Assembly: GCA_977016875.1 (NCBI GenBank)
Contig: CDRNST010000056.1
Span: 1,178,001-1,242,000, forward strand
Length of the DNA: 64,000 bases
Source of the DNA: Pavona decussata
Taxonomy: Eukaryota
Reading direction: 5' to 3'
Both the position numbers and the translations under genes were made by a program. The notes under the pieces were generated by a model. It did no database searches. It worked only from the letters and a program-made list of their open reading frames with translations, and was not told the DNA's origin. Below, piece by piece: positions 3,361 through 45,698 of the stretch (positions are counted from its first letter, which is position 1; every line of letters starts with the position of its first letter).

Positions 3361-3395
3361 CTTTTGTGAGCTCCCCAGGTGCGGCCAGACGTCTT

Positions 3396-13040: not shown

Positions 13041-15305
13041 ATGGATATTCAAACCTTGTTGAACAATCTTCATGAAGAAGTATCCTGTTCTGTTTGTATG
13101 ACCAAGTTCACTGATCCAAAGCAGCTGCCATGTTTGCACAGCTTTTGTCTTCACTGCCTGCAAAGGATTCAACGAACGAGCGGAAATCGAGAGACCATTT
13201 CATGTCCAGAGTGTAGGCAGAACTTCAGGATCCCTGAAGACGGTGATCTTAACGCTTTGCCGACAAACTTTCGAATCAATAGTTTGTTGGATGTGTTAGC
13301 CATAAAAGAATGCAACATGAGCGGCGTGAAGTGTGGAAATTGTGACAAAAGAAGCGGAGGAAGTAGTTCGTACTGCTTTCAATGTTGTTCCTTCTGGTGC
13401 GATGAATGCATCAGCTCCCACAATTTCATCAAAGTCTACAAAGAACATTACGTGCTGGCGCTGAAAGACTTCCAAGATCGAGACTTTGAGAACATTTTAA
13501 AGCGGCCAGCATTCTGCCAACAGAAGCACCATGAAAGGGAAGAGCTCAAGTTCTTTTGCACAGATTGTAAAGTTGCCATTTGCAATTCATGTGTTGCTAC
13601 AATTCACGAAGGTCACGCTAAAATGGTTTTGGAAGAGGCAGCTAATGCGCGAAAATTAGAACTGAAGTCAGCAATTGAATATCAGAAACTAGAGGCACAG
13701 AACATGATGGCACAAATCGAAAAACTGGATGAGAACTGTGTGACAGTTCAAGAACAAGCTGCTGGAGCTAAAAGGGACCTGCAGCAGTTTGTTGACAGCA
13801 TGACTGCAATTATGGAGGCAAAAAAGATGAAATTCTGTGATGGAGTGGAGAACAAAGTGGAACAATATCTCAAGAGAGTGGGAATGCAAAAGCAAGAGAT
13901 TGAACAACAAGTAAAAATGCATGAATCATCAATCGAGAAAAGCGAAGTACTCTTGAAGCGAAGCACAAGCGCTCAAATCATGCAGCCAAATGAACTTCTG
14001 GACAAACCATTTAGGAGGCAAGGCGACCAAGTACGAGACACATTTGACCCTGATAAGTCTGATAACATAACTTCTCCTTTGTTTCATTTCGTAAAAAATG
14101 AAAAGTTGTCCGATCATGTAAGCGTCGAACAACTCGGCAGTTTCAAATGTTTTCTCACTAATTCTATTCCACAACAATCAAGTGCAACAGGGAAAGGGAT
14201 CAGTGAAGCGACTGTTGGACTTGAAGCACAGATTGTCGTGACAACAAGGAACGCTCAAGGAGAACAACGTTACGAAGAGCGTGACTGCATAACATTGGAA
14301 ATCACAAATCGTCAAGGCCATGACTGTGTGACTCAAGCGCAAGTCCAAGATAACAAAGATGGCACTTACAAGATCAACTACTTTGCCAAAGAAACCGGGA
14401 CGTGCCAGGCATCAGTGAAGGTAAATGGAGAATATGTTCGTGGCAGTCCTTTTCAAGTTCAAGTCAAACCCAGACAGTTCAGACCCATGCTATCTTTTGG
14501 ACTGAAAGGTTCGTCTGCTGGAATGTTTAGCAACCCTTGGGGGGTAGCAGTGAACGAAGGAAATGAGATTGCAGTGACTGAGACTGGTAATCATAGGATC
14601 CAGGTATTTAGTAGTAATGGAACCCATTTGAGGTCTTTTGGTAAAAAAGGTGATCAGCAGGGAGAGTTTGACTGGCCTGCTGGGATAGTTTTTCTTAATG
14701 ACAGTATTATTATAGTGGCTGATTGTAAAAACCACCGCGTTCAACTCTTTAGTGGTCAGGGTGAATACCTTGGACAGTTTGGAGTAGAAGGAAGTCTTGA
14801 TCACCAGCTTAAGAATCCTCATGGTTTGTCCATTGACAGTGATGGCAACATTATTGTTGTTGATAGAGGAAATAAATTAGTTAAGGTCTTCTCGCATGAT
14901 GGTCAGGTTTTTTGCCACATTGGCACAAAGGGGTCTCTCATCGGCCCATTTCACTGTATCCAACATGATAACTTTCTTATAGTATCAGACCGAGGTGATC
15001 ATTGTGTCAAGGTGTTTAACAGGGAGGGGAAATTTCTTTATAAATTCGGAGAGAAGGGGGATGGGGACGGGGAGTTTAATGACCCTAGTGGTCTGTCAGT
15101 AAACAAAGCAGGTAACCTGATGGTTTGTGATACCAGCAATCACAGAATTCAGGTATTCGAACTGAATGGAAAGTTGGTCACCAAGTTTGGAACAAAGGGC
15201 AGTAAAATGGGAGAGTTCAACCGACCACTCTCTGTAGCAGTCATGAACGATGGTAGGATAGTTGTGTCTGACAATCTCAATCATCGTATTCAGGTGTTTG
15301 CATAG
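13041..15305 (+). CDS. TRIM-NHL E3 ligase paralogue G1 (TRIM71/TRIM2/3-type architecture), 754 aa
   Basis: C3HC4 RING (CSVC..PCLHSFC..C..CPEC), two B-boxes, coiled coil, filamin (DNKDGTY..GSPF), six NHL repeats; single open exon. Confidence 0.95.
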   Translation: MDIQTLLNNLHEEVSCSVCMTKFTDPKQLPCLHSFCLHCLQRIQRTSGNRETISCPECRQNFRIPEDGDLNALPTNFRINSLLDVLAIKECNMSGVKCGNCDKRSGGSSSYCFQCCSFWCDECISSHNFIKVYKEHYVLALKDFQDRDFENILKRPAFCQQKHHEREELKFFCTDCKVAICNSCVATIHEGHAKMVLEEAANARKLELKSAIEYQKLEAQNMMAQIEKLDENCVTVQEQAAGAKRDLQQFVDSMTAIMEAKKMKFCDGVENKVEQYLKRVGMQKQEIEQQVKMHESSIEKSEVLLKRSTSAQIMQPNELLDKPFRRQGDQVRDTFDPDKSDNITSPLFHFVKNEKLSDHVSVEQLGSFKCFLTNSIPQQSSATGKGISEATVGLEAQIVVTTRNAQGEQRYEERDCITLEITNRQGHDCVTQAQVQDNKDGTYKINYFAKETGTCQASVKVNGEYVRGSPFQVQVKPRQFRPMLSFGLKGSSAGMFSNPWGVAVNEGNEIAVTETGNHRIQVFSSNGTHLRSFGKKGDQQGEFDWPAGIVFLNDSIIIVADCKNHRVQLFSGQGEYLGQFGVEGSLDHQLKNPHGLSIDSDGNIIVVDRGNKLVKVFSHDGQVFCHIGTKGSLIGPFHCIQHDNFLIVSDRGDHCVKVFNREGKFLYKFGEKGDGDGEFNDPSGLSVNKAGNLMVCDTSNHRIQVFELNGKLVTKFGTKGSKMGEFNRPLSVAVMNDGRIVVSDNLNHRIQVFA

Positions 15306-15375
15306 GTGAACATGAGTTGTATATTCAGTCCTCTGGATATGACGTCTCTAAAGGGGCATCTTTTAGTTGTTTTAA

Positions 15376-15759
15376 AGGGGCACTGTCGCTGAGACTTTTG
15401 CTGCCGATATTTGATCAAAGCTACTCAAATATTTAACACAGGACCTTTTCTCTAACATGAAATTGTCTGTAGAGCAAAAAAGAGGAAAGTATAAACCGAT
15501 TTCTTCAAGGAAGAACAAAGTATGAATAAGTTTTTTGCAGTTTTTCAAAAATACGCATGAACAACTTTAAAAAATTGGCCATTTTTTTTTCAAGTTGTAA
15601 TCCATTTCCATCCAAGCCATCCGCAGCAAACGATTATAAATACTAGCTTATTTAATTACTCGTAAGGTAATTGTTAACATTACTGAATCATTATTTTAAC
15701 ATATCCATCGATACAAATGTTTATTTAAAGGCACAATAAATATGGGTGACACTGCCCCT
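15376..15759. mobile_element. TTAA-flanked MITE (Kolobok-like); same family as 30621-30996 and 48954-49329
   Basis: ttaa|AGGGGCACTGTC...GACACTGCCCCT|ttaa. Confidence 0.75.
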
Positions 15760-15851
15760 TTAAATGTCTAAATTTATGTGCGAAACTTTACTTGAAAATA
15801 AATATCACATCTAAGTACATTCACTGAATAATAAATCATTTTAATTATTAA

Positions 15852-16264: not shown

Positions 16265-16421
16265 TTAAAGTCATAGGAATACCGTAGCTCCGGGGCAACC
16301 AACGGTTCGTTTCTGTGAAGTATCTGTTCGGAAAGATATTACCCGCCTCACAAATTCAAGTTAAATTGTGAAAAAAAAAAAGAAACGTTTTCTTTAGCGA
16401 CAGGTCACTGAAACTTTCGCA

Positions 16422-17985: not shown

Positions 17986-18313
17986 CCCTTATACACGACT
18001 AAATTTTCTTTGCGGTTAGTAGCTGGTTAACGAATTTCCCCTCTAATAAAAAGAAAGCAAACAAAGCTAGACCAAGAAAGTAGTGCACTCTTTCAATTTC
18101 TTCAACTTGAATAACCACCCCAAACTTTCACTATACATGCGTTGTGAAGACCACGTATAAGGAAAAAAGACATTGCCGTTAACATTTTGCCCGCCAAGAG
18201 TATAGGTTCTATTCTATACTTTCTTGCCGGTGTCCTGTGGACGCAAAAAGATGGCGCTTGAGTGGCAGGTATTATGGGTAATACTCCTTCAACATCCGTT
18301 TTCTCATTCGTGT

Positions 18314-20963
18314 CCATTACTACTAAATACCTGGATCCCATGGTTACCAGTCTCAGTCACTGCAATCTCATTTTTTTTTCATTCACTGCTATCTCCCAAG
18401 GATAGCTAAACATTCCATCAGACGAAACTTGTTGTCCAAAAGATAAAACGGGTCTGAACTGTCTGGGTTTGATTTGAACTTCAAAAGGACTTCCACGAAC
18501 ATGCTCTCCATTTACCCTCACTGATGCCAGGCATCTTCATTTTCCGGTTTCTTTGGCAAAGTAGCTGACCTTGTAAGTGCCATCTTTGTTATCTTGGACT
18601 TGCGCTTTAGTTGCACAGATATGGCCTTCACGATTTGTGATTTCCACTGTTACGCAGTCACGCTCTTCATAAAGTTCTCCTTGAGCGTTCCTTGTTGCCA
18701 CACCAATTTGTGCTTCAAGTCCAACAGTCGCTTCGAAAATTGCTTTCCCTCACGCACTTGATTCCTTCGGTCTGGTTTTGGTTGGGAAATTAATGAGAAG
18801 GCCGATTTGTTCAGCGCTTACATGATGGAACAACTGCTGATTTTTCACGAAATCAATCTCCGGCGAACTTTAGTCGTCACGGTCAGCTGGCCTTTTTGAT
18901 AACCTTGTATCTGAAATGGTTTGTCCACAAGTTCATTTGGCTGTACGATTTGAGCGCTTGTGCTTCGCCTTAAAAGTATTTCGCTTTTCTCGATTGTCGT
19001 TTCGTGCATTTTGAGTTGTTGTTCAATCTCTTGCTTTTGCACTCCCAGACGCTCGAGATATTCTTTCACTTTGTTCACCACTATATCAAAGATTTTCACC
19101 TTTCTTGCATTCATGATTGCAATCATTCTGTCAACAAACTGCTGCTTGCACGTCACCTTTCCCTCTAGCGGATTGTTCTTGAAGTTTAACACAATTTTCA
19201 TCAAGTTTAACGATTTAATTGTGCCATCTTGTTCTGTGCCTCTTGATTGCGATATTCAATTGTTGACTTCAGCTTTAATGGTCGCTTATTTGCCGCATCT
19301 TCCAGAAGTGTTTTGGCGCGTCCTTCGTGAATTGCCGCGATACATGAACTGCAAATGGCAACTTTACAGATCTTTAACTCTTATTTTTCGTGGTGTTTCT
19401 GTTAGCAAAACGCTGGCCGATTTAAAATGTTTTCAAAGTCTCGATCTTAAAAATCTCTTAGAGCCAGTGCGTAATATTTTTCGGGATCCGGGATTTGGCT
19501 CATTTTAAGACAGGGATTCGGTATTTTGGAGGAAAAGGGGAGCGAGATTCGGTATTGTAGTTATAAACAGGACACGGGATCAGGCGATTTTACGAAACGG
19601 GATTCGGCAAATGTTACTTTAAGAACCGAGATTTGCTTCGGACGGGTCATATTGCCACTCAGAATAGAGGGAAACACATCTGAGGGGCATGAATTTTTGA
19701 AATAATCTAAAAAAAAAGACGAGGGTGATTTTACGATTAGGGTAATATATTTTTCCAATATTTCGAAAGGCACGGCCTTTCTCGGCTTAAGGGTATGTTT
19801 GAGACACCCTAAATAAGAGAGGCCTTGCCTTTCGAAATATTGCAAAAATATATTTCCCTAATTGTAAAAGCAGTAGACTGTTCACAGCCCCCCTATTTTT
19901 CCGTGGGATTCTCGAGACCGGTACGCTTCGATGGAACCGCCGCCATCTTGGTTTGTAATAGGGAGCGCGATCTTCCCCTCCCCCACTATACTAACACCCA
20001 CTCCCGCTCCCCTCGGTAGTTTAGACACTCTCCCCAGATCGCGCTCGCTTTTACAAACCAAGATGACGGCGATTCCATCGAAGCGTACCGGTCTCGAGAA
20101 TCCCACGGAAAAATAGGGGGACTGTGAACAGTCTATAAAATCAGCCTCGCTATTTTTTAGATTATTTGTTCTACAATTTGTTGCTGATTAGATCCTTTAC
20201 TGCAGGATACGGTACTTTTGTCTTGTCGCGGTAGTCCTTCCAAACACAGTTACTGGTTTTTATTCAATTTTTCAAAATTTTCGAAGGGAGCATGCCCCCA
20301 GAAACCCTTAAAAAAGTAGATCTTTTCCTCATCCTAACCCTTCCGCAATTCATTTCAAACTTTCTGTGTTTCGGTCTTAAAGCGAGGGAATTTGGACAAG
20401 CCAAGGAAAAGGAAATTTTACCTTTGAAGGAAAGGACTTTTACAGATTCATGACCAGGATCGGGATTAGCCCATAAAAGCAAACGGGACTCAACGGGATT
20501 GGGGGAAATTTTTGGTCAGGATGGCGGGATTGAAGAACCCTATTGTGGACCCGCTTCTTTGTTAGCTTAAATGCCATTATGGAAACTGATACAATTACCA
20601 CACCAAAAGGAACAACACTGGAAGCAGCATAAAGAGTTTCCCCTTCTTTCGTCGCAATTACCACACTTCACGCCGCTTGCATGTCATATGTTGCATTCTT
20701 TAATGGCCAACACATTCAACAAACTATTAATACGAAAATTTGTGGACAAAGCGTTAACATCACCATCTCCCGGGATCCTAAAGTTCTGCCTACACTTTGG
20801 ACATGAATGTTCTCTCGAATCCGCTCGTTCGTTGAATCTCTTGGAGGCAGTGAAGGCAAAAGCTGTGCAAACATGGCAGCTGCTTTGGATCAGTGAACTT
20901 GGTCATACACACAGAACAGGATACTTCTTCATGAAGATTGTGCAACAAGGTTTGAATATCCAT
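18314..20963 (-). pseudogene. TRIM-NHL pseudogene G2, closest to G1 and inverted relative to it
   Basis: ATG at 20963 ([16 protein letters not shown]..); frameshifts; ~1.08-kb insertion at ~19477-20554; coiled coil EIEQQLKMHE..RSTSAQI matches G1; homology ends in the first NHL repeat. Confidence 0.9.
19477..20554. mobile_element. Composite nested non-autonomous DNA elements inside G2
   Basis: Outer element rich in cgggatt motifs ending gaaccctattgtggaccc; inner palindrome ~19700-20170; innermost hairpin MITE 19874-20135 (tagactgttcacag...ctgtgaacagtcta). Confidence 0.75.
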
Positions 20964-21115
20964 GATTAATGAGCGAAAACACTGAAAAAGCTTTGGGGCT
21001 AAACACAAACACGCCAAAAAAAAAAAAATAAACGAAGTCTTAAACAATGAGGTCTTGTTACTTAGCCCAGGAGATGTTGAACTTTAAATGCCTACCAGTC
21101 ACAAAGTGCTACTTA

Positions 21116-24100
21116 AGATGTTTTGACTTCTAAGTTATTGCTCTCATAATAGATTGACCTCTTAATAGATTGACTTTCGAAAGTCTAGGCTACAGTCTTG
21201 AGTCAGATCTTCAGTTTCCAGTGCTTGGAGCTTGGTGAAATACTTCTATTACAGGAGACTGCTCACTGTCTCTTTCTAAATAGTCGAGTGGGAAGGAGAA
21301 AAAACCCTACTGGGGTGTTGTTTAGCTCACTCGCGTCTTTGTTTAAGCTCTCCCGTTTGAAACTCCACAAAGGGACTTCAAGATCAGTAGAATTCATAAC
21401 TACTACAGTCTGAGTCTTTGGAAATTGGACAATGATTGAGCCCGTCACTTGTCGTGATTTTGCGTGTCGCAATTCAATTTGCAGCCGGTTAACTGAACCA
21501 AAACATTAGTTTTTTTTGAAGTGTTTTCTTAGAAATGAGATGAGGCTACAAGCTATTTCACACGCAGGATTTAGCATAAATGAACCACAAAGTGCAAAGG
21601 TATCTTCTAACAACATCAACACTGATCAACCACAAGCTTATCACATGTTTCAGTGACCCTGTGATGCCTGTCTTCTAAGAACGATTGATTGCACAGGAAA
21701 AAAAACATCCTGATGTTTTGAGAATTGCGATGAAAAAAGCGCGACGAGTATGTTTTTAGTTCATTCACTTTAAACAGAGTCGAAGAAACGAAATGCTCTC
21801 TTAGGCTCTATTGATGAGAATTTTTTCGCCAACTTAGTAAAGAAATCAACACTATGAACATAACGGGAAAATATAAATGGCTGAAATAGCAAAAGTAATT
21901 GTTTCTGCCCCTCCGGCCCTCCGGCAATCGGTCGTCCATAATTCGTAGTTGCTAAAGTGAATTCGATTCGCTTTCGCTAAACTTTATTCGCTGTCGCTGA
22001 TAAGTTGGATTCGTTATCGCTAAATATCAATTCGCTGTCGCTAATTTCAAAACTGCTGACTTTAACCATGGGAAAATCGATTCACCGAGGAAAAATTTAC
22101 CCGAAATTTATCTTGCGTTTCACTTTCCCTCGTTGAAAAGGTCACACGTATTGCCTCAGGCGGCTCTTCTTTGGGATTCAGGCTGTTTTTGGAACAAAAA
22201 TAAATATTTTGATTAGGAAAAAATCAGATAGATTACGAAATGAAGAAAGAAAATCGTGGAATATTCAGGAAATTGAGGATTCAAAAGCGAATTATACTCA
22301 CATGATAGCTCTAAATCGCGCCATCTAAGCCGCGTGCACGTCAAAAATGCACTTTTGCTTTACTTCAGATGGATTAAACTGAATAGTTTCACAACACGAT
22401 ATAATTCCAGATCTGTCAACAACGTACATGCCGACAAGCGCCGATTGGTTTATTTGCATGCATATGATTTCCTGTTTCACCCATTCTGCTAGCTGTGATG
22501 AGCAAATCTTTTGTTCTCTTGACGGATCCCATCTCCGTTAGGCGAAATGTAATTTACATCTCGGGAAAAATTCGTTACACTGACAAATTCAGGTTTCCCG
22601 TGAGTAGAGTGTCATCAAGTCACCTTCCCCCTGCCTTGATTGGAATGAATGTATGTCAGGACTTCAATTAACTTTGTGCACCTCTTCCCTGTGCTATTAT
22701 GATTATTGGCAAGACGACAAGGGCCATGAGAATGTGTTTTGGCGAATCGTTAGGGGAAAGTGCAAACCCAAGGATGGGAAGGGGAATGGAGGTGCTGTAG
22801 GAATGCAATCGATTCTTCTCATTCTAGATGAACCGAAGCTACGGTGCCGGTCCTGATGTTTGATATGGCCAGCTCAATCTATTCCTGCCATACAAAGGCT
22901 GACCTCGCAGTAAAAGCGGCAGTCAACACTGGTTTTCATACAGGTCATCCAATGCCTCCTCCACAAAAGTAACACTTCGACTAAATAAAAATAATACTTC
23001 ACGTCATGCTAAACATTTCCTTGTGCCTAATTTAATGCACACTAGCTTCATGTAATTTCTCCTCTTCGGCACAACCAATTTAATACAGAACGATATTTAC
23101 CTGTAGATCGACTGTCGCCGGCGTACGCTCGCACACTTGATTCTTTGTGAGGGGCTCTATTGTCTCGCACTTCTCCCAGACACTCTCAGTTGTCGAAAGC
23201 AAATGCGCTATGAAAAGTTTCCGTCGTGTCCCATTTGGCATTTTTGTTACAGCGCTTTTCCTGTCGCATTCTTTAAAACTAAGTCTTGATTAGCTACAGC
23301 AAGCTTCTCAGTTGCCGAATAAATGAATGAAATCAATTATGGCTTCAAGCTCTTGCTTTAATTCAGTTTCACTGAGTTAATGCTGAAAATATTATGATAT
23401 ATTTGCACCTTTCTATGCTTTAATCCTCCCAAATGTAACTACAATTAACAAAGTAACTGTTACAAAATTGTTTGAATGTTACGGAATTGATATACATCAC
23501 AGCTTACTAGTTTAATTAAGGCTATAACTCATTAATAAACAAGACTCCTGTCACAGGATTTCATTGACCCTTCGCGCTCTTTCACTTTTACAGCTCAGAG
23601 TAGATTATGGAACACAATGCCAGCTATACTCCTTTAAAGGCTTTACAAAGTTACTTTGCCAACGCTACGATGAAATATACTATAGATCATTTAAGTTTCT
23701 TGCGATAACGATCTACTTTCTTTCGCTTATCTTTTTACGAGTAGTTTGGGAGGGCCACTAGTCAAGCAGTCAGTTGATTAAATAATAAAAGACCAAATAA
23801 TAAAAGCTTTCTTTCCGTGAACCAAACTGATATATTTTTCAACTCATTGTCCAGTAAATTAAGACCAAACAGTTTCGAATATCTTTGGTAATAAAAGGAC
23901 GTTCTGAGCGACTATACCTAGCTCCTTGAATTGTTCTCAGCAGAGATTCAATGTCTCAGTCTAGGCACATATAATTCACTTTTCAAGTGGTTTCAGTCTT
24001 AGAGAATCGCCTACAACAAAACTTTGCTGACCATCTGCCTTGGAAAGCCTTTCAACACAATCCTCGAACAATGAGTTGAAAAATACTTCTAGTTGTTCTC

Positions 24101-24687
24101 AAGTCTTTAAAGTAACCCTTTAATGCCTTTGACCCTTCGTTCTTGACGATTTCACAAACTTTCTCCAGGACATGAGTCGCATTGTAGTCGATTAATTTTA
24201 CAGGACATTAAACCAAGAAGGCACTTTGGACGCTAGTCGATGGTTAAACGGTGACTCGATTTCTGCTTATGTAATTGATTGAAATTAACTGTCCCATGGA
24301 GAATTATTATTACATCCCGCGGAACCATCTTCTAAAATAACAATGACCTAAGACATCTTTGTTTGCAACATGGAGCTTCAGACATATCTCCACAATTATT
24401 GCAAATTCATATTAAAACATACTGTTAAAACAATGGGAAAATGGAATGTAAATAAATGGACGACCCTTTGTCGTAAACAATGGTGGAGACGTTTCTACGG
24501 ATTTTGAACCATGCTTGAAAACGTATAACTATGTTACTATCCCTGCCATACCACTAAATATAACAAGTAATATTGACAAGGGTGCAAATCTTCGATTGAT
24601 GTGATCTTTTATAGGATTGATACCGTCCCAGCTTTTTGCAATACGACCAAGACACTCCAGCCGGCGGTGCTCGGACCAATACCACAT
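21116..24687. repeat. Segmental duplicate of ~31530-34534
   Basis: Collinear high-identity match; this copy has ~510 extra bp at ~21697-22205. Confidence 0.9.
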
Positions 24688-33900: not shown

Positions 33901-35526
33901 GTTGAATAAAACTTCTAGTTTATCTCAAGTCTTTAAAGTGACCCAGCCTTTGATTCCTTTAACCCTTCATTCTTGACGATTTCACAAACTGGCTCCAGAA
34001 CATGAGTCACATTGTAGTCGATTAAGTTTACAGGACATTAACCCAAGAAGGCACTTTGGACGCTAGTCGATGGTTAAACGATGACTCGATTTCTGCTAAT
34101 CTAATTGATTGAAATTAACTGTTCAATGGAGAATTATTATTACATCCGGAAAATCTTCTAAAATAACAATGACCTAATAAACCTTTGATTGGAAAATGGA
34201 GCTTTCGACATATATCTCCACAATTATTGTAAATTCCCATTAAAACAGACTGTTAAAACAGTGGGAAAATGGAGTGTAAATAAATGGGCCACGTTTTGTC
34301 TTAACAATGGTGGAGACGTTTCTAAGGATTTTGAACCATGTTTGAAAACGCATAACTATGTTATTATCCCGCCATCCCACTAGATATAACCAGTAAAATT
34401 GACAGGGGTGCAAATCTTCACTTGATGTGATCTTTTATAGGATTGGTACCGTTGCAGATTTTGCAATCAGCCCAAGACACTCCAGCCCGCGGTATTCTGA
34501 CCAATACCACATTGTGAATACACTTTTATCACATCTATTCAAAAATCTGGACCTGATTGTTATTGAGGTCGGATACAACTATCCTTCCATCACTAAGGAC
34601 CGCTATGGAGATTGGACAGTTAAACTTTCCCCTGTTACTGCCTTTTGTTCCAAACTTTGTCACAAACTTTCCGCTCATCTCGAACACCTGAATCCTGTAA
34701 TTCATTTTATCACAGACCATCAGCTGTCCGGCTTTGTTTACTAACAAGCAACGAGGTTCATTGAACTCCCCGTCTGCAGCCCCCTTCGTTCCAAAGCTGT
34801 GCATAAAATTTCCCTCCCCGTCAAACATTTTTATGGAATGATCACCATTGTCTGAAACTATAAAGAAGGTCCCAAATTGAATACAGTGCATTGGGTGTAG
34901 CAGAAAGCCCCCTGTGCCAATTTTACGAACACATTGACCACTATGCGAAAAAATTTTAATTAATTCGTTGTCTGAATCAGCGACAATGATTTTGCCATCA
35001 CTGTCAATAGATAAACCATAAGGAGCCCTTAACTGATGATCGAGACTTCCTTCTCCTCCAAACTGTCCAAGGTATTCACCCTGGCTACTAAAGAGTTGAA
35101 CTCGGTGGTTAACACTGTCCGCCACTATAATGTTATCGTTATGAAAAGCTATCCCAGTGGGGTAGTTAAACTCTCCCTGTCGATGACCTTGCCTACCAAA
35201 AGATCTTAAGTGGTTTCCATTACTACTAAATACCTCGATCCTATGGTTATGAGTATCAGTCATTGCAATCTCATTTTTTTCATTAACTGCGACTCCGCAT
35301 GGCTTGCGAAGTATTCCAGTAAACCAACCTTTCTGTCCAAAAGATAACATTGGTCTGAACTGTCTGGGTTTGACTTGAACCTCAAAAGGACTGCCACGAA
35401 CATGCTCTCCATTTACCTTCACTGATGCCTGGCATGTTCCGGTTTCTTTGGCAAAGTAGCTGATCTTGTAAGTGCCATCTTTGTTATCTTGGACATGTGC
35501 TTTAGCTGCTTTGGTTGCACAGTCAT

Positions 35527-38500
35527 CAGGGGTGGATCCAGGATTTTACATGAGTGATTTTCCCCAAATTAACTAGGGGGGTTTGGGGGCATGCTCCCCC
35601 AAGAAAATTTGAAATTTAGTGCCCTCAGAATGCAATTTTCCTGCATTCTGAGAGCACTTCAAGCCATTCAGACACATCAACAGCACCTCCTCAGAAAGGC
35701 ATAATTCTGTACAAAAAATCATTTCTGTGTATTTACACAGACATACCAGAATAACATTAAACTAAGCCATAGAGTTAGACTGTATTTGACTAAGTAAAGT
35801 AACTTCTTTTTACATAAATTTGCCTTTCCGTGTCTAAGGAGTCTAGCATGTGAATTAAGATTTAGGGCTACCTTTGAAGATGTTAAGTAGATCTGCTGCC
35901 TGGATTGCTGTCTTGGATGCTTGTGGGAGTGGAAATAACTCTCCAATGGGAATCATCTCAGTAAGCTCATAGTGGGAATGGAGGAAAAAATATTACGATT
36001 AGTGAATATTAAGGAAACATCATTGTTATGAAAATGTAACAGCAAAAACTGAAAAGTTGGAATCATACTTGCCTTTTTCAGACTTATAGATCAGTGTATA
36101 AAGTGATGTGGTCCAATGAGCTCAGACTGAGAGAATATGTAAAAGCCATTTAAGCTTATTGAACACCCAGTGTCAGTGGAAACATAACTCTAAAAACTTA
36201 ATTGAAGAATGAGTTTTTGTCCAGATATTAGTACTTAAATTGTACCACAGACACCAGTTATGTATCTGTACTGTTCTCCATCAGTTTAAGGATTACATCA
36301 ATCCTGATGGAACATAACTCACAAGCACTCTAGAAACACTAGTGACTGACTGGTACAAAATTATTCATTTAAAATATTTTCCATTCTCATTCTTCTAGGA
36401 TGTAAATTAGCAAATAAATCTATAATTTGTTCAAGGTCTAATTCCATTTCTCTATGGGCATGCATCAGTGCTAATCCATTCAGTCTATCCTGGACCATTG
36501 TACTTCTCAAATAAGTCTTCAGATTTCGGAGGGTTGAGATGGACCTTTCACAAGATGCTGATGAAATAGGAATGGTTATCAGGATTTGAAGTATAGTATA
36601 GATATTGACATAAGCACCCTTGTCAATTTGTTCCAGGGTGGCATCTATACTGTCAGGGATGTCCTCTCTTCTATCATTTTTCCCCTTCCACATTGTTTCC
36701 CACAACACAAGCTCTGCTGGTAAACCTGCATAATTAGGGATATCATGTCTGTAATGGTTACAAAACTCCCTAACATTATCCTTCCAAATGGGGTTAGTAG
36801 CCAACAAAATAGAAGGAATCACTGAAAATCCTTTGTAGCACACAAAAACATCATCCTCAAATCTACTGTCCAGTTGTGCAAGAGCATGGTTAAGGAAGTC
36901 TGTTGTCAGATTGATCCTGTAATAGTCTTCAGGGGTTGGGGCTGGTGCATTGTTTCTGTGAACTTGCCTCTGAATTATTCTGGGCATGCTTGGCTGTACT
37001 GAAACACGCCTTGCTAGGGTAACAGCTTCTTCATAGAGAGCATGGTGCCTAGTATCAATGTCAGTTTGCATATCTGTTAAGGCTGATTTTAACAGAACAA
37101 TTTCCTCTTTTGCTTTGAGAAGATCCATTGCTTTCTTTTGTAGCCTGACTGTGAGTGGTCTGGTTAAGTCTAAAATGTGTCTGACAATAACAAGAGTAAC
37201 AATAAAGGAAAATGTGATTGCATTAATTAAGGCTTGTGCATCATTTCTACTGTTTTGATTCCAGTTGCCATGGCCAGGAGCATTTCTGTTCATTGAAATG
37301 TCTTCAAGTGTAGCCACAACTGGGTGAAGAAGCTCCACAATTCGGTCCATACCATCAATACGCTCAATCCACCTTGTTCGACACACATTTACCAAAACAA
37401 AGTGGTTGGCAGCAGGCATCAATACTCTAATCTTGCTGATCAAATGCTGTTGTCGTTTCGGGGAATTGTCAAAAAATTCTGAGAGCTTTCTTACAACATC
37501 CATCATGTGTCTAACAAGTGGTAATTGGCATGTGTCAGCAACACACAAGTTAAGCCTATGGTTCATGCAATGAACGTAAATAGCCTTGTCATGTTCAGCC
37601 CTAATAAGTGATGAAGCTCCATTCAAGCGCCCAGACATATTGCCTGCACCATCATAACACTGGCCACGACAGTCATCCATAGATAGTCCTAAATCAGCTA
37701 CAGCACCAATTATTAAATCTTTGATAGCTGCTCCTGTTGTTCCATCCTCACAAAGGTAGAATCCCACAAATTCTTCTCTGACTGTTTTGGTTGAATCAAG
37801 AAATCTGATCACCACTGAAAGATTTTCTTTATTTGATATGTCAGCTGCTTCATCAGACATAATAGAAAAATATTTGCTATCCCTGATTTCCTGTGATAAA
37901 TTATTCACTATGATAGCACCCACAGTTGTAATCATCTCATTTTGAATGGTTTTAGAGATATATGTCGCATTTCTGGGTGCAGTTTCCAAGTGATGTTTTA
38001 GTGTTTGGTCGCCGCTGTCAATTCGAAATTCTAACAGTGCCTGGAAATTACCGGCAAGACTAGCATTTTGTGGATCATCATCTCGTCTACCTCTGAGGGC
38101 TATGTTGTTTTTTCCACAGAAAATTATTGTTTTAAAAAGGGATTTCAGAATTTCACGATTTCTATTGATTTGCTGTTGGAGTAAGTTGTTGATCTGCTGA
38201 TCAATTGGGACCGCTTCTCTTCTCATATTTCTCAGAAAATTCTCCATTGCAATCACTGCAAAATTATGCATCTCACATTTTCCGCTCGCGTGTTTGCTAA
38301 AACGTGAAATGGCGGACGTCCAAAGTGTAAGTGGAGACTTGTACAATTTGTCTAGTTTATTCGTATTTCGCCCACACTGGACTCCAAAACAAACACACGG
38401 TAAACAAAATGCACCATCGAGATATTTAGAGTATGCTAGCCAGGGAAATCTTTTCAGCCAGCTCCACACAAAATGACGGTTAGAATTCGAACATTCCACT

Positions 38501-39227
38501 GACGCTGGGAAATCAAATAGCTCACCTGGTTTCCACACATTCTCTATGAACTTGAGCTTGTCCTGGTCCGAATATGAGCTGATTTCCTTGAAAACCAAGC
38601 CAACATCGTACTGAGAACAGTCCTCCTTTCGACAAACTGGATCGCCTCGAACCATAGCTTTATAATTTAAGTTCCCTTGTCTTCCTTCGTAGCAAGTAAA
38701 CGATGAACTCTAATCGGAGCAAGAACAAACGAAGGACGTTCGGGGAGATGCTTCCCTTTATATACGATTGTCAGTAGTTTCCACGGTAGTTTGTGGCCTG
38801 GATAACCAATCACAACCGAGTTTGAGTAGTTCGCAAGACAATGTGCGTGTTTCTGGCCAATCGAAGAGGGTTTTGAGTGATTTGTGAAAAGATCCATAAA
38901 CCATTCAGTCCCACCCTGTCCCACCCACTGCGTACAAATTTTGTCCGGTTGTACATACGAAATTTTTTCGTGTTGTACTCGGACGTCTCGACAAAAGACG
39001 AAAGCGCGCGAACGGAGACTCGTCTAATTCGCTCGGGTTGCTGTGGAATCGACGGAATAACGAAATATGATGCTTTTTTCTTTGTTTTACTTCATAATAA
39101 ACAATAAAACAAGAAGGATAATTGATTTCTTGAGCTACAAGAAAGAACCTGAGAAATAACAAACGTAGGTTTGGAAAAATTTGAGTGATTTCTGGAAATC
39201 ACTTGAACTACTCTGGATCCACCCCTG
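35527..39227 (-). mobile_element. Autonomous-looking hAT transposon, 3701 bp, 5-bp TSD (hAT5-like)
   Basis: Perfect 15-bp TIR CAGGGGTGGATCCAG / CTGGATCCACCCCTG; TSD GTCAT at 35522-35526 and 39228-39232. Confidence 0.95.
36361..38655 (-). CDS. hAT transposase (P52rIPK/ZMYM1-like: TTF-type zinc finger, DUF4371, hAT C-terminal dimerisation domain), 764 aa
   Basis: WLKRFPWLAYS..AFCLPC, FSIMSDEAAD, GQCYDGAGNM, YVHCMNHRLNL, TRW, PISSASCERSIS; catalytic D, D and E present; uninterrupted. Confidence 0.93.
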   Translation of the reverse strand: MVRGDPVCRKEDCSQYDVGLVFKEISSYSDQDKLKFIENVWKPGELFDFPASVECSNSNRHFVWSWLKRFPWLAYSKYLDGAFCLPCVCFGVQCGRNTNKLDKLYKSPLTLWTSAISRFSKHASGKCEMHNFAVIAMENFLRNMRREAVPIDQQINNLLQQQINRNREILKSLFKTIIFCGKNNIALRGRRDDDPQNASLAGNFQALLEFRIDSGDQTLKHHLETAPRNATYISKTIQNEMITTVGAIIVNNLSQEIRDSKYFSIMSDEAADISNKENLSVVIRFLDSTKTVREEFVGFYLCEDGTTGAAIKDLIIGAVADLGLSMDDCRGQCYDGAGNMSGRLNGASSLIRAEHDKAIYVHCMNHRLNLCVADTCQLPLVRHMMDVVRKLSEFFDNSPKRQQHLISKIRVLMPAANHFVLVNVCRTRWIERIDGMDRIVELLHPVVATLEDISMNRNAPGHGNWNQNSRNDAQALINAITFSFIVTLVIVRHILDLTRPLTVRLQKKAMDLLKAKEEIVLLKSALTDMQTDIDTRHHALYEEAVTLARRVSVQPSMPRIIQRQVHRNNAPAPTPEDYYRINLTTDFLNHALAQLDSRFEDDVFVCYKGFSVIPSILLATNPIWKDNVREFCNHYRHDIPNYAGLPAELVLWETMWKGKNDRREDIPDSIDATLEQIDKGAYVNIYTILQILITIPISSASCERSISTLRNLKTYLRSTMVQDRLNGLALMHAHREMELDLEQIIDLFANLHPRRMRMENILNE

Positions 39228-41099
39228 GTCATGGCCTTGACGATTTCTGATTTCCACTGTTACGCAGTCACGCTCTTCGTAGCATTGTTCTCCTTGAACG
39301 TTTCTTGTTGTCACAACAATTTGTGCTTCAAGTCCGACAGTCACTTCGCTGATTCCTTTTTGACTGGCACACGATTGATCCGCTTTGGTTTGGCTAAGAC
39401 AAGTTCTGAAAGTTCCGATTCCTTCAGAGTATGTTTTTTGCATCAATGCTCCGTTTTCGATGAAACTTAAGTGACGAAGGCCTTGAATGTCACTATCGAG
39501 TTGCTCTTCGGCTTCATCAACGATTCCTTCCGGAAAAATTATGTCTGAACGTAAAATATCAATGTTCGTGCTTCGTTTCAACAAGGTTTTCTTTTTTTCG
39601 ATACCTTCCTCAATCGCTTTGGCTTGATCTTCTTCTTCGCGCTGTTTAATTTCCAGACGCTCCAATAATTCATTCCCTTTGTTTTCTAACGCAAGAATTA
39701 TCTCCTTTTTGTTCGTTTCAATGGCTGCGATCATTTTGTTTGCAAACTGTTGTGCATTTTTTTTCTCACTATCTAGTTGTGCTTTAATGCTGACACAGTC
39801 ATCTTGTAGCTTAATGATTTTGTTTATCTTCTGAAGCAATATCTGTTCCTCAATTTCGATCGCAGACTCAACTTGCACTCTCCTTTCTTTCGCTTCCTCG
39901 TCCACAACTATCTTTGGGTGAGCTTCGTGAAGTGTTGCACTACATGAATAGCAAATGGCAACTTCGCAGCTCATACAAAAGAACTCTAATTCTTTCTTCT
40001 CGTGGCCTACCCTTCCACAAAACGTCGGCCGCTTTAAAATGTTCTCAAAGTCTCGATCTTGAAAGTCTTTCAAAGCCAGTGCGTGGTGTTCTTTATTGGC
40101 TTTCATGCCATTATGCAGACTGACGCAGTCATCGCACCAGAAGGAGCAACACTGGAAGCAGTAAGAGCATTGCTCGCTTCTTTTGTCGCAATTTCCGCAC
40201 TTGACGCCGCTTGTATCGCACTCTTTGATGGCCAACACATCCAACAAACTGTTTATGCGGAAGTTTGTGGGCAGAGAGTTAAGATCACCGTCTCCAGGGA
40301 TCCTGAAGTTCTGCCTACACTCTGGACATGGAATGGTTTCTCGAATTCCGCTCGTTCGTTGAATGCCCTCCAGGCAATGAAGACAAAAGCTGTGCAAACA
40401 TGGCAGCTGTTTGGGATGTGTGAACTTGCTCATACACACTGAACAGGATACTTCTTCATGAAGATTGTGCAACAAGGTTTGAATATCCATTATTTAGTAA
40501 TACAAAAGAAAAAGTCTTCAGTTGGAGTTGAACTGAAGTATTAAACAATGATGCTTTGTAATCTTAGCCCCGGGTATGCTGAATATATCTACCAATCACA
40601 AAGCGCTCGTTTTGAGATGTTTTGACTTGTGGCAAGTAGTGTGAAATTAAAGTACTGTATTGGAGATTTCTAAGAATTGTTTAGGGTAGTTTGACCTCCG
40701 GATGCATAGAGGGCTCAAAATTAATGGGTTAATGAAATGCTTCTGGAATAATACTTGACGTAGATCGTGACAAGTATGTTTTGATGCTTACTTAGGAATT
40801 TGGACCATAATGGAGAGAGTTGGCTTGAGTAATCTAAAATTTGACGAGCCCTAATTTGATGTAAGAAATTATATATTGCTCATGTTAGTGACAGTTGCGA
40901 AGCCTTGAAACAAATCTTGTTATCGGTATTAACGGTGATTGTCCACTGAATCAGTACATCTTTGACCTAGGATGTCCAGCATATCTAGGAATAATTGATC
41001 TCCAAAAAAAAATTCCAGTTATCATGAAGTTTGAAAATAGCTTAACGTGTATCATTTAAGTCCCTCCGGTTTTGACAACAGCCGATGCTTTCTTATGTT

Positions 41100-41320
41100 T
41101 TATCCTAGAACAGGAGCTCCTGCCTAGAACGTATGCTAGCGGACAAACTTTATCAATTACGTACCGCATACAACACTGTAATATACACAAATAGAACAAG
41201 AGAACCACACGCAAATGGACTGTTTGATATGGAAACAGAGAGACAAAAGAACAGCTTTATTCCACGAGCTTTTGTTATTATTCCCCAGTTGCATTCTTCA
41301 TTTTACATTTTTCTTGAATA

Positions 41321-41365
<45 letters not shown>
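41100..41365 (+). mobile_element. LINE 3' fragment ending in (ATT)n
   Basis: Relic peptide ETERQKNSFIPRA followed by an (ATT)n tail at ~41324-41364. Confidence 0.5.
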
Positions 41366-43466
41366 CAGTAAAACCACTGTACATTTTTTACGTAAGAATG
41401 GTTTTCATTAAAGCTTTATAAGAAAATTGCTCATCGTAATTCTGAATTCTGGTGTAAATTATTTATTTCGATACCGACATCGGCTGCCTGATGCCCAATC
41501 GATAATCCTATTATAATGGTATCGATTGTCATCGAACATCATTTCGAAGCAACAGAGCTGTATAAATGGTATCGATTTTTATTGTCATTTATTACCAATT
41601 CCTTGTTTCAGTCTTCATACCTAGTGACCTCTTTCTATTGAACTTACCTCAAAGCTCATTTGTTCCCAGTGCAAAAAGGCTGAATCTTAGTTCCTTCCTT
41701 TAAGGAACCTCAAATAAGTTTGGAAAAGTACAGTTAGTCAATAGAGCTTGCTTGACTAAGCTGCATACTACGTCCCTTATCAAACCTAAGAAGCTAGACT
41801 TCTGAGACTTGTTTTAAGTCGACTCCTGAAGCCAAGTCAAGTAAACTGAGTGATGGCCTGGGACAAAACTAAAACACGAGCAAGTTACGACAAAAATGGA
41901 TTTGAGAAGGAAGCCGCGGAAAAGGCGCATTAGGAACCACTGTTGGGGTGCAATAACTCGGACATTACTGATAACATGCTTGTTACTTCCCGGATTACGC
42001 GCCGTGATTGGTTTTCGTAGTTTCGGTAATCGTACGTACACTGACTCTTTGCAAGCTGTAGGCCATGGCCGCTAGGTGAGAGCAGGGATTTATCTACGGT
42101 TATTTCTGTTTCGTCCGTTGATATTTTACTAGTTTTCGCCGAGCGAAATTACCAAGAAAAGTGAGAGGACAGTTTTATGAGGACGACCACCTGATTTCTT
42201 GACTCTATGTTGTTACACGACGTTATAAGTAACTGTGTATTGCTTGGTAAAATCTCTTGCAGGACTGACAAAATATATTTTTGCCGCCGAATTCGCAGTA
42301 AATTCCAGTCTTTTGCTGACAAAACAGCCGAGGTGTCTACCGGGAAATATTCAAAATTGCCGAATTTTTTACCATTCGATGGTGAAAGCGTAGGAAAGAT
42401 GATTGCTCGCTTTCTTTAAGTTTGCTAATTTATTGACTGAACAGATTAAGGGTCACATTCCTCTAATCACTTGTGATTAGGGTACAATCTTATCAATCCT
42501 CTTTGGTGGTCGGTCACGTACCAAGAAATGAATGCCTAGGTAGTCGCCCCCTTAATGGATGTTCAACAGCATTTGTGGATATTCAAACGCTGTGTCCCTG
42601 TTACTAATAAAAGATATTATTAAAAACTGGATCATTATATAATGCTATTCCAGGGATTTGATTGGCTTAGTGGCCATGGTATATGAGCCATTATATCATT
42701 ATACCATGTCCAAGAAATAGCGACCATTAAATTCTTACAAAGCGAAAAGCAACATTTCTTTGTTTTTAATAAATCGCGCGAATCGGATATGACATGATTA
42801 ACAGGGAACCTACATCAAGAAATCGATATTCAGTAGGGTCCCATAAAAGTATACACCTGAATAACAAAATAATCACGGTTTATTTACATTCATTTACAAA
42901 AAATGTTTTTAGCGGCAAAACAGATGAACTTAGAATAAATTGATATTGTTAATTATGTAGTGTAAACGATATTAGGTCATTCTGGCCTACAGATGTTTCC
43001 AGTAACGTAATTGAGCTACAATACCAAAGTGACACGTAACTTAGAATTCCTAGAAAGGATCAAAACTGTTTCAATTTTTCAAAACCCAACTTGACATAAA
43101 TTTACAAACACTCTTTTTTTCATGAGAATTTATTTTATAAGAATATCGAGACTGATCGATACAGATCAGGACACCAAACACTTGTAATTGATACCCCAAT
43201 ACATTATAAAACGAAAATGTCATACGCTATAAACTTTCACGAGAATATTTTCAGCCTAACATCGGCAGAAAAATAAGAATAGTCAGCCTGGACCGAAAAA
43301 ACAATATTCTTATAAAAAAAAAAAGAGTGTCATAAGCTCCAAAATATAAAGCAATTGTTTTAATTCGTTAGTTGATGATAATTAGATGCAGTCAATTATA
43401 CTTCAATACACACACATATTACCTATATTATATCTCAGATAACTCTGAAGAAAATATCACTGGCAT

Positions 43467-45698
43467 CTACTCAAATATTTGGATGCGATGGTTGTTATAA
43501 TCAGTGACCACTATCCTGCCATCACTAAGCACTGCTGAACAGTTTGGCTTACGAAATTCCCCTCTCTTTACTCCTTTTCTTCCATACTTCCCTACAAACG
43601 TTCCGCTCAGTTCGAACACCTGCACTCTGTCATTACCATCATCACAGACCATGAGGTGGCCTGCCTTGTTTACAGACAGGCAACGAGGTCTATCGAAATG
43701 CCCGCCTCCGTCACCTTGTTTACCAAATGTAAATAGAAAAATCCCCTCTCTATCGAACACTTTGATGCAATCTTCATGACTGTCTGACACCAAAAGATAT
43801 TTATTATGCTGGATGCAATGAAAGGGAAAGGTTAAAGAACCGTCTCCGCCGACTTTACGCACTAATTTTCCGCTGCAAGAAAATACTTTGATCTGTTTGT
43901 TTCTTGGATCAGCAATAATAATGTTATTGTCACTGTCAATGGATAAACCCAGAGGAAGATTTAACTGATGATCAAGAAAACCTTCTCCGCCAAACTGTTT
44001 GAGAAACTCACCCTGCGCACTTAAAATTTGAAGTCGGTGGTTATTACGGTCTACAACTAAAATGTTATCATTCAGGAACGCTATCCCAGTAGGTTCGTTA
44101 AATCTTCCAGGTTGATCACCTTTTTTGCCGAAAGATCTTAAGTGAATTCCTGCACAACTAAAGACCTGAATTCTATGGTTATCTCTATCAGTCACTGCTA
44201 TTTCATCATGTTCATTGACTGCCACACCCCACGGACTGTTGAGCTTTCCAGCAGACGAACCTTTTTGTCCAAAAGATAACACGGGTCTGAACTGTCTGGG
44301 TTTAACTTGAACCTTAAAAGGACTGCCACGAACATGTTCTCCATTTACCTTCACTGATGCCTGGCATGTTCCGGTTTCTTTGGCAAAGTAGCTGATCTTG
44401 TAAGTGCCATCTTTGTTATCTTGGACTTGCGCTTTAGTGGCACAGTCATGGCCTTGACGATTTGTGATTTCCACTGTTACGCAGTCATGCTCTTCGTAGC
44501 ATTGTTCTCCTTGAGCGTTCCTTGTTGTCAAAACAATCTGTGCTTCAAGTCCTACAGTTGCTTTACTGATCTCACTGGCACTCGATTGAACGGCTTCAGT
44601 TCGGCTTAGGAATGTTCTGAAAGTTCCGGTTCCTTCAGAGTTTGTTTTGTGCATTAATGCTCCGTTTTCGACGAAAATAAAGCGACGTAGGCCTTCAATG
44701 TCACTATCAAATTGATTTTCTTCATCACCGACCGCTTCCCCAAAGGACGTGTCTAAATATAAAATATCAGCGTTTGTGCTTCGCTTTAACAAAGTTTTCT
44801 TTTGTGCAACAGCTGTCTCAATTGCTTTTGCTTGATCTTCCACCTCGCGCTGTTTGTTTTCCAGATTCTCAAGTAGTTCGTTGCCTTTCTTTTCTACGGC
44901 GAGAAAGATCTCCTGTTTGTTTGCTTCAATCGCTGCAATCATTTTATCTGCAAACTTCTGGGCACTTTCCTTCACATTCTCGATCCGTGCTTTAACATTG
45001 ACGTAGTCACCTTGAAGCTTGACGACTTTGTTTCTCTTCTGGAAAATTATTTGTTGCTGAAACTCAATCGCAGACTCAACTTGTATTTTCCTTTCATTCG
45101 CTGCCTCGTTCAAAAGTATCTTTGGGTGACCTTCATGAAGTGTTGCAATACAAGAATAGCAAATGGCAACTTCGCAGCTCTTACAAAAGAACTCTAATTC
45201 CTTCTTTTCATGGCCCGGCCTTCCACAAAATACCGGCCGCGTTAGAATGTTTTCAAAGTCTCGATCTTGAAAGTCTTTCAAAGCCAGCGCATGATGTTCT
45301 TTATTCGCTCTGATGCCATTGTGCAGACTGATGCAGTCATCGCACCAGAAATAACAACATTGAAAACAGTAGTAGCTTTCTCCGGTTCTCTTGTCGCAAT
45401 TTCCACACTTGACGCCGCTTGTATTGCACTCTTTGATGGCCAACACATCCAACAAACTGTTGATTCGAAAGTTTGTCGGCAAAGCGTTAAGATCTCCGTC
45501 TCCCGGGATCTTGAAGTTCTGCCTACACTCTGGACATGAAATTGTTTCTCGAATTCCGCTCGTTTGTTGAATCCTTTGCAGACAGTGATGGCAAAAGCTG
45601 TGCAAACATGGCAGCTGCTTTGGATCAGTGAACTTGGTCATACACACAGAACAGGATACTTCCTCATGAAGATTGTGCAACAAGGTTTTAATATCCAT
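43467..45698 (-). CDS. TRIM-NHL paralogue G5 (743 aa from MDIKT)
   Basis: Intact RING-B-B-CC-filamin-NHL x6 ORF. Confidence 0.95.
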   Translation of the reverse strand: MDIKTLLHNLHEEVSCSVCMTKFTDPKQLPCLHSFCHHCLQRIQQTSGIRETISCPECRQNFKIPGDGDLNALPTNFRINSLLDVLAIKECNTSGVKCGNCDKRTGESYYCFQCCYFWCDDCISLHNGIRANKEHHALALKDFQDRDFENILTRPVFCGRPGHEKKELEFFCKSCEVAICYSCIATLHEGHPKILLNEAANERKIQVESAIEFQQQIIFQKRNKVVKLQGDYVNVKARIENVKESAQKFADKMIAAIEANKQEIFLAVEKKGNELLENLENKQREVEDQAKAIETAVAQKKTLLKRSTNADILYLDTSFGEAVGDEENQFDSDIEGLRRFIFVENGALMHKTNSEGTGTFRTFLSRTEAVQSSASEISKATVGLEAQIVLTTRNAQGEQCYEEHDCVTVEITNRQGHDCATKAQVQDNKDGTYKISYFAKETGTCQASVKVNGEHVRGSPFKVQVKPRQFRPVLSFGQKGSSAGKLNSPWGVAVNEHDEIAVTDRDNHRIQVFSCAGIHLRSFGKKGDQPGRFNEPTGIAFLNDNILVVDRNNHRLQILSAQGEFLKQFGGEGFLDHQLNLPLGLSIDSDNNIIIADPRNKQIKVFSCSGKLVRKVGGDGSLTFPFHCIQHNKYLLVSDSHEDCIKVFDREGIFLFTFGKQGDGGGHFDRPRCLSVNKAGHLMVCDDGNDRVQVFELSGTFVGKYGRKGVKRGEFRKPNCSAVLSDGRIVVTDYNNHRIQIFE

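Follow-up and report, generated by a model that had tools for sequence, protein, structure and literature searches.

Do the clustered TRIM-NHL genes of a stony coral form a rapidly turning-over system, in which a constant ubiquitin-ligase module is combined with a variable receptor? The question is raised by a stretch of 64,000 nucleotides from Pavona decussata (assembly GCA_977016875.1, contig CDRNST010000056.1, positions 1,178,001 to 1,242,000 of the forward strand; hereafter referred to, as a whole, as the window), in which an array of TRIM-NHL paralogues occupies ~33 kb (window positions 13041-45698). We favour, with a probability of about 0.65, an explanation in which the array belongs to a coral-lineage-specific, very large family of intronless class VII TRIM-NHL genes, evolving by birth and death and by recombination, the members of which would share a ligase module and carry propellers with paralogue-specific ligands.

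Composition of the array and extent of the family

Open reading frame (ORF) listing, Pfam scans and tblastn searches of the window with the copies themselves identified five paralogues, three of them intact (T1, T2 and T4) and two broken (T3 and T5psi; Table 1). No sixth TRIM-NHL copy was detected by tblastn or Pfam within the 64 kb, in agreement with the five single-exon paralogues of the original prediction. The coding sequences are intronless, with a single uninterrupted frame per copy, and the window is free of N positions.

Pfam matches and alignment, with a model of T1, gave the same protein order for T1, T2 and T4: the RING comes first, then B-box1 and B-box2, a putative coiled coil, the filamin/Ig domain and, last, an NHL propeller of six blades. 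The RING was recognised by both zf-RING_UBOX and zf-C3HC4 in these three copies and in the N-terminal piece of T3, and its eight zinc ligands (C-C-C-H-C-C-C-C), like both B-box motifs, are kept in 24/24 copies compared. B-box2 corresponds to a zf-B_box match, and a B-box1-type Cys/His pattern is conserved at amino acids (aa) 97-135 of T1, without a Pfam call. The segment at aa 201-375 fits a coiled coil in its length and its place in the protein, with a weak TRIM_CC match in T4 only (E=0.006, below the cut-off). It is followed by Filamin (1.6e-19) and NHL (8.9e-47) matches, and it was these, with no B30.2/SPRY domain, that the Pfam scan of the copies returned. The AlphaFold2 model of the filamin-NHL part of T1 (predicted local distance difference test score, pLDDT, of 88.5) has six blades of four strands each. 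Among solved structures, it is matched best by those of zebrafish Lin41 filamin-NHL and of human TRIM71 NHL (template modelling score, TM, 0.94; root-mean-square deviation 1.6 Å; 38% identity), and zebrafish Lin41 filamin-NHL was also matched by sequence (E=6e-35). Thin/TRIM32, TRIM2/3 and Brat are the next nearest by both sequence and structure. By their domain content, the copies are class VII TRIM (TRIM-NHL) type E3 ubiquitin ligases, with predicted ligase activity.

Amino-acid identity among the copies is 88-95% in the RING, 81-88% in the filamin domain, 28-65% in the coiled coil and 61-68% in the NHL domain. The coiled coil and the propeller diverge, as had been claimed. The RING, which had been described as nearly invariant, is the most conserved module, with all zinc ligands kept, but it does vary, and the filamin domain comes close to it in conservation.

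Full-length protein searches of the whole assembly (602 Mb in 1180 contigs, the window lying on contig C56) gave 614 and 559 first-look candidates. About 60 candidates were scored, and nearly all had open frames of 690-850 aa without stops. The NHL profile found 1046 first-look repeats, the 150 scored representing ~130 separate loci, and the genome-wide copy count that the original prediction had proposed is thus at least ~130 NHL-bearing loci. Arrays of the family were found on contigs C56, C90, C519, C91, C129 and C183. More than 3500 database relatives, named by their sources “E3 ubiquitin-protein ligase TRIM71-like”, come from Montipora, Oculina, Porites and Stylophora, in which the protein relatives have 62-64% identity. 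In a tree with named proteins (best matches only), seven Montipora and four Oculina sequences each formed a clade of their own, a pattern that fits independent expansions. Short contigs of the European Nucleotide Archive containing many cluster members were rejected as transcript evidence, because they come from Porites-type assemblies with no sign of RNA. A full-text literature search yielded no paper devoted to an analysis of the coral TRIM-NHL family, which is mentioned only in passing. Merulinids have expanded orthogroups with NHL and B-box domains (PMC11639872), and a TRIM71 orthogroup has a high dN/dS in Montipora and Acropora (PMC9145168).

Duplication, recombination and loss of copies

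Self-blastn blocks revealed a tandem segmental duplication, the two units of which are ~89% identical (Table 1). T1 and T5psi are convergent and have a common inverted upstream flank, indicating an inverted duplication. The origin of T2 is composite. Its far upstream flank is ~89% similar to that of T4. In the four successive 100-nucleotide (nt) intervals from -300 to +100 of the ATG, T2 matches T4 at 99/100, 100/100, 100/100 and 100/100 positions, with identity decreasing to 82% by +300, whereas T2 and T3 are merely 74-86% identical in this promoter and RING-start tract. From about +131 to +1400, T2 is 95-100% identical to T3, and the resemblance extends, at 88-97%, across the 3′ third of the gene and 2.5 kb of the downstream flank. 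T2 is therefore T4-like from -326 to +100 and T3-like thereafter, and the tandem duplication, inversion and chimerism put forward in the original prediction are all present. On the alignments, the T4-like tract is the putative product of a recent gene conversion or crossover with T4. The dispersed repeat inserted upstream of T2 has at least 40 near-full-length copies elsewhere in the genome (86-94%), and is missing at the homologous point upstream of T4 in the self-comparison.

T3 and T4 are only 74-81% identical, much further apart than the two duplication units. The simplest history would thus be the duplication of a two-gene unit, with loss of the T3′/T4′ interval by unequal recombination in one copy, followed by short conversion tracts. 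Within the RING-start tract, T2 is closer to T4 of the same genome than the orthologue of T4 is (~96%), and that split is therefore probably older than the last conversion. The structure of the array differs between close relatives: T1 and T4 are separated by ~47 kb in the related assembly L022, versus ~28 kb in the window. On the L022 contig (ERZ25073805), a Pao/BEL-type retrotransposon ORF at 19901-22232 lies just downstream of the T3 orthologue, replacing the T3 flank of the window. A repeat of ~390 bp is present at 15372-15763, 30617-31000 and 48950-49333, lying in the 3′ flank of T1 and far upstream of both T2 and T4 (68%).

The modules of a single gene were also found to have separate histories, in trees that combined the window copies with 20 additional intact paralogues of this genome. 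T2 and T4 group as sisters for the RING/B-box region (support of 93), for the coiled coil (100) and for the filamin domain (90). By contrast, the NHL tree places T4 in neither the C56 nor the C90 clade, and the NHL data reject a forced grouping of T2 with T4 (approximately unbiased, AU, test, p=0.003) or of T2 and T4 with L010 (AU p=0.0006). The ancestry of the T4 propeller differs from that of the T2 and T3 propellers. The identity between T2 and T4 switches at about nt 1430, which is the filamin-NHL boundary. At this junction, the proportion of synonymous differences (pS) is depressed: over 80 codons its median is 0.09, versus 0.25 for the body of the NHL domain and 0.26 for the coiled coil, and it is lower in 12/12 independent pairs (Wilcoxon p=0.0005 and 0.005). 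The junction is a candidate recombination anchor. Its low pS could reflect a gene-conversion hotspot or a nucleotide-level element. Likewise, RING pS stays at 0.14-0.26 where other domains reach 0.5-0.7. This low synonymous divergence suggests that the constancy of the RING and filamin domains results from homogenisation by gene conversion in addition to protein constraint. A family-wide target site of the microRNA type was dropped as a candidate, because no run of at least 14 nt is conserved at ≥95% across the family coding sequence.

T3 is split cleanly by a hAT transposon. The 15-bp terminal inverted repeats (TIRs; CAGGGGTGGATCCAG) begin with CAG and are flanked by a 5-bp target-site duplication (TSD), ATGAC, the single-copy target of which is visible in the uninterrupted sequence of T2. 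An intact ORF of 764 aa (36361-38655) encodes a transposase with Pfam DUF4371 and Dimer_Tnp_hAT domains, and six further full-length copies, with 97-99% identity, are present elsewhere in the genome. The family looks currently active in this coral genome. Short TIRs starting with CAG, a DUF4371 and hAT-dimerisation transposase and near-identical copies are those of the hAT superfamily, whereas the TSD of this element is 5 bp long rather than the usual 8 bp. Subgroups of hAT elements with 5-bp target duplications have been catalogued. The site is empty in three related public assemblies (L022 and L023, ~98% identity; L024, ~90%), in which the orthologue of T3 is an intact ORF of 749 or 745 aa. 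The empty site in relatives proves the insertion itself and, together with the intact orthologue, indicates that the T3 knockout is very recent and private or polymorphic. T3 differs from its intact orthologue by 27 nonsynonymous and 7 synonymous changes, a near-neutral ratio.

The decay of T5psi is of a different kind. Its sequence contains at least four frame changes, and its homology to T1 stops abruptly at T1 aa 527. Positions 392-653 of the insert within it gave 2356 first-look matches genome-wide, on both strands, whereas the outer parts are unique. Neither TIRs nor a TSD of its own were found at the junctions of the insert, and its interpretation as a simple transposon was therefore rejected, only its core being repetitive. 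The pseudogene is common to the related assembly L021, and its decay thus predates that split. Two transposon knockouts had been claimed for the array: that of T3 is established by its TIRs, TSD and empty site, but that of T5psi is only possible, the gene being also frameshifted and truncated. With its duplications, a pseudogene, a hAT element absent from relatives and inter-copy recombination, the array nevertheless has the birth-and-death character attributed to it.

Table 1. Coordinates of the array members and associated features in the window
Feature	Positions	Strand	Basis
Neighbouring gene: EGF exon (8195-8551) and C-type lectin exon (9333-9749)	8195-9749	+	Pfam EGF 9.6e-8, Lectin_C 2.4e-23
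T1, intact intronless TRIM-NHL gene, 754 aa	13041-15305	+	ORF; Pfam RING, B-box, Filamin, NHL; AlphaFold2 model; intact orthologue
Filamin-NHL junction of T1 (aa 401-480), suppressed synonymous divergence	14241-14480	+	pS in 12 independent pairs
T5psi, decayed paralogue: frameshifted, interrupted, 3′-truncated	18313-21008	-	tblastn pieces in different frames
Insert inside T5psi, 1072 bp, palindromic repeats resembling miniature inverted-repeat transposable elements (MITE-like)	19483-20554		Junction reading, genome search
Duplication copy 1, one gene (T2)	21112-31284		Self-blastn
T2, intact mosaic gene, 749 aa from the ATG at 26937	24688-26937	-	ORF, Pfam, sliding identity versus T3/T4
T2 promoter and RING-start tract, 99-100% identical to T4 (99.8% overall)	26808-27263	-	Pairwise alignment
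Dispersed repeat, 979 bp, inserted 326 bp upstream of the T2 ATG	27264-28242		Genome search
Duplication copy 2, two genes (T3, T4) and hAT	31526-49596		Self-blastn
T3 C-terminal piece (filamin end and full NHL propeller), starting with ATGAC (35520-35524)	34538-35524	-	tblastn 92% to T2; Pfam NHL x5
hAT transposon, 3703 bp, splitting T3	35525-39227	-	TIRs, TSD, Pfam DUF4371 and Dimer_Tnp_hAT
T3 N-terminal piece (RING to mid-filamin), ending in ATGAC (39228-39232)	39228-40490	-	tblastn 95% to T2
T4, intact gene, 743 aa	43467-45698	-	ORF, Pfam, domain trees, AU test, orthologues

Selection and the variable face of the propeller

The ratio of nonsynonymous to synonymous divergence (ω) was obtained from Nei-Gojobori counts on pairs of copies. 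Domain-wide values were 0.16 for the RING, 0.14 for the B-box1 region, 0.25 for B-box2, 0.39 for the coiled coil, 0.36 for the filamin domain and 0.28 for the NHL domain; no domain had an ω above 1 (range 0.14-0.39, paralogue pairs). Within the propeller, constraint is unevenly distributed. By convention, the top face consists of the B-C and D-A loops and is the usual binding site (PMC6107167). In 12 independent paralogue pairs, ω was 0.61-0.72 for these top loops, 0.29-0.34 for the bottom loops and 0.25-0.27 for the strands (top versus bottom loops, Fisher p=1e-4). Each blade has its variable positions at the same places, namely the x of F-x-x-P-x-G in the D-A loops and the x of D-x-x-N-H in the B-C loops. 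To avoid circularity, the 36 most variable NHL positions were picked in the copies of contigs C90, C519, C91, C49 and C45 and measured in pairs of the C56 clade. At these hypervariable sites, ω was 1.01 (7 pairs) and 1.31 (5 closer pairs), versus 0.27-0.34 for the rest (p=2e-14), and 27/36 of them lie in the top loops (odds ratio 8.2, p=4e-8). By a crude residue count, the top loops of different paralogues carry net charges of between -11 and +4 (T1 +1, T2 +4, T4 +4).

Comparisons of orthologues gave lower values. Between T1 and its L021 counterpart, the synonymous divergence (dS) is 0.06 and ω is 0.23 for the whole gene. The orthologues of T4 have 97% and 92% aa identity; dS is 0.03 and whole-gene ω 0.37 with respect to L022, and 0.13 and 0.29 with respect to L024. 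In the latter comparison, the hypervariable sites have 10 nonsynonymous and 2 synonymous differences, giving an ω of 0.92 versus 0.29 for the rest (p=0.10). These orthologue values (0.23-0.37) indicate that the intact copies are functional genes under constraint. Purifying selection in the NHL domain, named beforehand as an observation contrary to a variable receptor, was indeed seen between close orthologues (NHL ω of 0.17 for T1), while the top loops of paralogues are considerably less constrained. The ligand face thus appears, from these substitution counts, to be free to change, or driven to do so, as copies diverge. Differences located mostly on this face are compatible with a repertoire of diversified recognition.

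The cluster evolves by birth and death, through tandem and inverted duplication, the decay of T5psi and the very recent strike of an active hAT element in T3. Recombination between non-allelic copies, or gene conversion, is frequent; it generates mosaics such as T2 and moves whole propellers between ligase scaffolds, as in T4. Under the explanation that we favour, the RING and B-box part would act as the constant ubiquitin-transfer module, the coiled coil, as the most divergent part, would probably set the pairing of copies, favouring homodimers, and the ligand of each paralogue would be set by some 30-36 top-face positions of the propeller. Given a shared ligase part and a varying top face, each copy would apply one ligase chemistry to an RNA or protein ligand of its own and, once made, would be retained by purifying selection.

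Several points weigh against this explanation. The ω values are Nei-Gojobori counts rather than the output of a recombination-aware site model, and both the trees and dS are open to distortion by gene conversion. At the 36 hypervariable sites, ω is not significantly greater than 1 (binomial p=1.0), and relaxed constraint on surface loops accounts for these sites as well as diversifying selection does. The same sites have barely changed between T1 and its L021 orthologue (1 nonsynonymous and 2 synonymous differences). The copy counts are lower bounds, and the pairing role of the coiled coil is something that we purely infer. The “variable receptor and constant ligase” logic of the original prediction is supported by the variation of the top face and the retention of the zinc ligands; it falls short in that no ω is significantly above 1 and that the constancy of the RING is partly a matter of low synonymous divergence.

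Neighbouring genes, alternative explanations and implications

The C-type lectin exon lies 3.3 kb upstream of the array, confirming the lectin gene reported next to it. On the far side is a gene with MAM exons, to which TSP1 exons are added in the related assembly (52970-53347, minus strand, in the window; 2038-2322 in L023; 776-985 in L022), and the ligase array thus sits between two genes for domains of the extracellular recognition type. The left end of the window contains a Ty3/gypsy-type long terminal repeat (LTR) retrotransposon (84-5311), with LTR-like repeats (84-261 and 5129-5311) that are 93% identical, ORFs for reverse transcriptase, RNase H and integrase (403-3055, minus strand) and a GC content of ~50%, versus ~40% around it. 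It is followed by a 412-bp tandem duplication (5311-6166).

Two known systems resemble the array. TRIM71/LIN-41, and also TRIM2, TRIM3, TRIM32/Thin and Brat, have the same domain order as the coral copies and provide the best sequence and structure matches. However, the bilaterian members are conserved single- or low-copy genes, whereas the coral has at least ~130 intronless loci in arrays, with species-specific clades and a top-face charge that varies. The original prediction drew this contrast with low-copy bilaterian TRIM-NHL genes, but it missed the coral host, in which “TRIM71-like” copies are numerous in public annotations. The number of paralogues, the species-specific clades and the doubt already published argue indirectly against one-to-one orthology with TRIM71. 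The immune TRIM arrays, such as the primate TRIM5 cluster and the teleost finTRIM genes (PMC3137616), resemble the coral array in their tandem organisation, gain and loss of genes, pseudogenes, constant part made up of the RING, the B-box and the coiled coil (RBCC), variable surface loops in the C-terminal ligand domain and recombination between paralogues. The coral genes differ in having an NHL propeller rather than B30.2/SPRY as the variable domain, a cnidarian host and an ω of ~1. As they are without B30.2, they are not members of the variable-B30.2 TRIM group, and these arrays are their closest analogue in logic only.

What the propellers bind is the point on which the explanations diverge. 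It is conceivable, although we would not count on it, that the family encodes germline-encoded intracellular sensors of non-self, the NHL faces binding RNA or protein of viruses, microbes or symbionts while the RBCC part ubiquitinates or signals. A very large lineage-specific family in tandem arrays, species-specific clades, hypervariability confined to the ligand face and the 10:2 ratio of nonsynonymous to synonymous differences at the hypervariable sites of T4 with respect to a related species would all be expected of such sensors, and a scleractinian-restricted NHL-domain gene with a Ka/Ks >1 was reported to be induced as Acropora tenuis larvae took up native symbionts (PMC7783167). The neighbouring genes, with their C-type lectin/EGF and MAM/TSP1 domains, are also suggestive, but the adjoining lectin is a matter of position, with no functional link, no ω is significantly above 1, and orthologues are under purifying selection. 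That selection would suit a role as diversified post-transcriptional regulators of the LIN-41/Brat type, each binding a set of host mRNAs in gametes, in embryos or at settlement, with the expansion representing subfunctionalisation rather than defence. The nearest solved structures are those of RNA-binding TRIM71/Lin41 filamin-NHL domains, and published expression data for “TRIM71” place its transcripts with the most egg-enriched ones of Montipora capitata (PMC7441918), and show an increase at settlement in Acropora (PMC12924552; bioRxiv 10.64898/2026.05.09.724056) and a daily cycle in Euphyllia (PMC9481131). We nonetheless consider such a role doubtful: the crude charge count (-11 to +4) is not uniformly positive, as would be expected for RNA-binding NHL domains, more than 100 copies with rapid turnover and pseudogenes would be unusual for developmental regulators, and strict orthology of the coral copies to TRIM71 could not be confirmed by the authors of one of these studies (bioRxiv 10.64898/2026.05.09.724056).

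The abundance of mobile elements in and around the array (the active hAT, the MITE-like and 979-bp dispersed repeats and the LTR element), combined with a hypervariable binding face and conserved effector modules, might suggest that the family tracks the products of transposons or endogenous viruses, in an arms race like that of the KRAB-ZNF proteins with TRIM28. Such a race would account for the number of copies as well as for the richness of the surroundings in transposons. Transposon strikes are expected by chance in a repeat-rich genome of 602 Mb, however, and there is no direct link between any copy and any element, making genome defence improbable. We consider it just as improbable that a recombination-prone region simply keeps duplicating an intronless gene, with unconstrained top loops and mostly redundant copies. 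The ω of ~1, and no higher, at the variable sites, the death of two of the five window copies and the frequent gene conversion could all be neutral in origin, but the intact copies have kept ORFs of 743-754 aa with orthologue ω values of 0.23-0.37, most full-length genome matches have no internal stop, and the same positions are variable in separate clades.

A more specific proposal can be made, although we judge it unlikely as it stands. A germline-encoded repertoire of ~150-200 intracellular TRIM-NHL ligases in stony corals might serve diversified recognition of non-self (virus, symbiont or transposon), with new specificities arising through point changes at the ~30 top-face positions and through the shuffling of whole propellers and coiled coils between ligase scaffolds, by crossover at two anchors conserved in nucleotide sequence, the RING start and the filamin-NHL junction.

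The observations new to this study are the hAT site empty in relatives, the mosaic structure of T2, the separate ancestry of the T4 propeller, the suppression of pS at the filamin-NHL junction, the variation of the top face and the purifying selection between orthologues. Coral papers treat “TRIM71” as a single developmental regulator, LIN-41 (PMC12924552; bioRxiv 10.64898/2026.05.09.724056). As “TRIM71” matches belong to a family of more than 100 members with fast turnover, which differ on the ligand face, expression results given under this name in work on the stress, symbiosis and development of corals call for interpretation at the level of individual paralogues. The presence or absence of the hAT element and the T2 mosaic provide ready markers for copy-number and structural variation among colonies. 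If the family does recognise foreign or symbiont molecules, it would constitute a new arm of cnidarian innate immunity, and a second, independent use of a constant TRIM ligase with a variable C-terminal sensor, here an NHL propeller.

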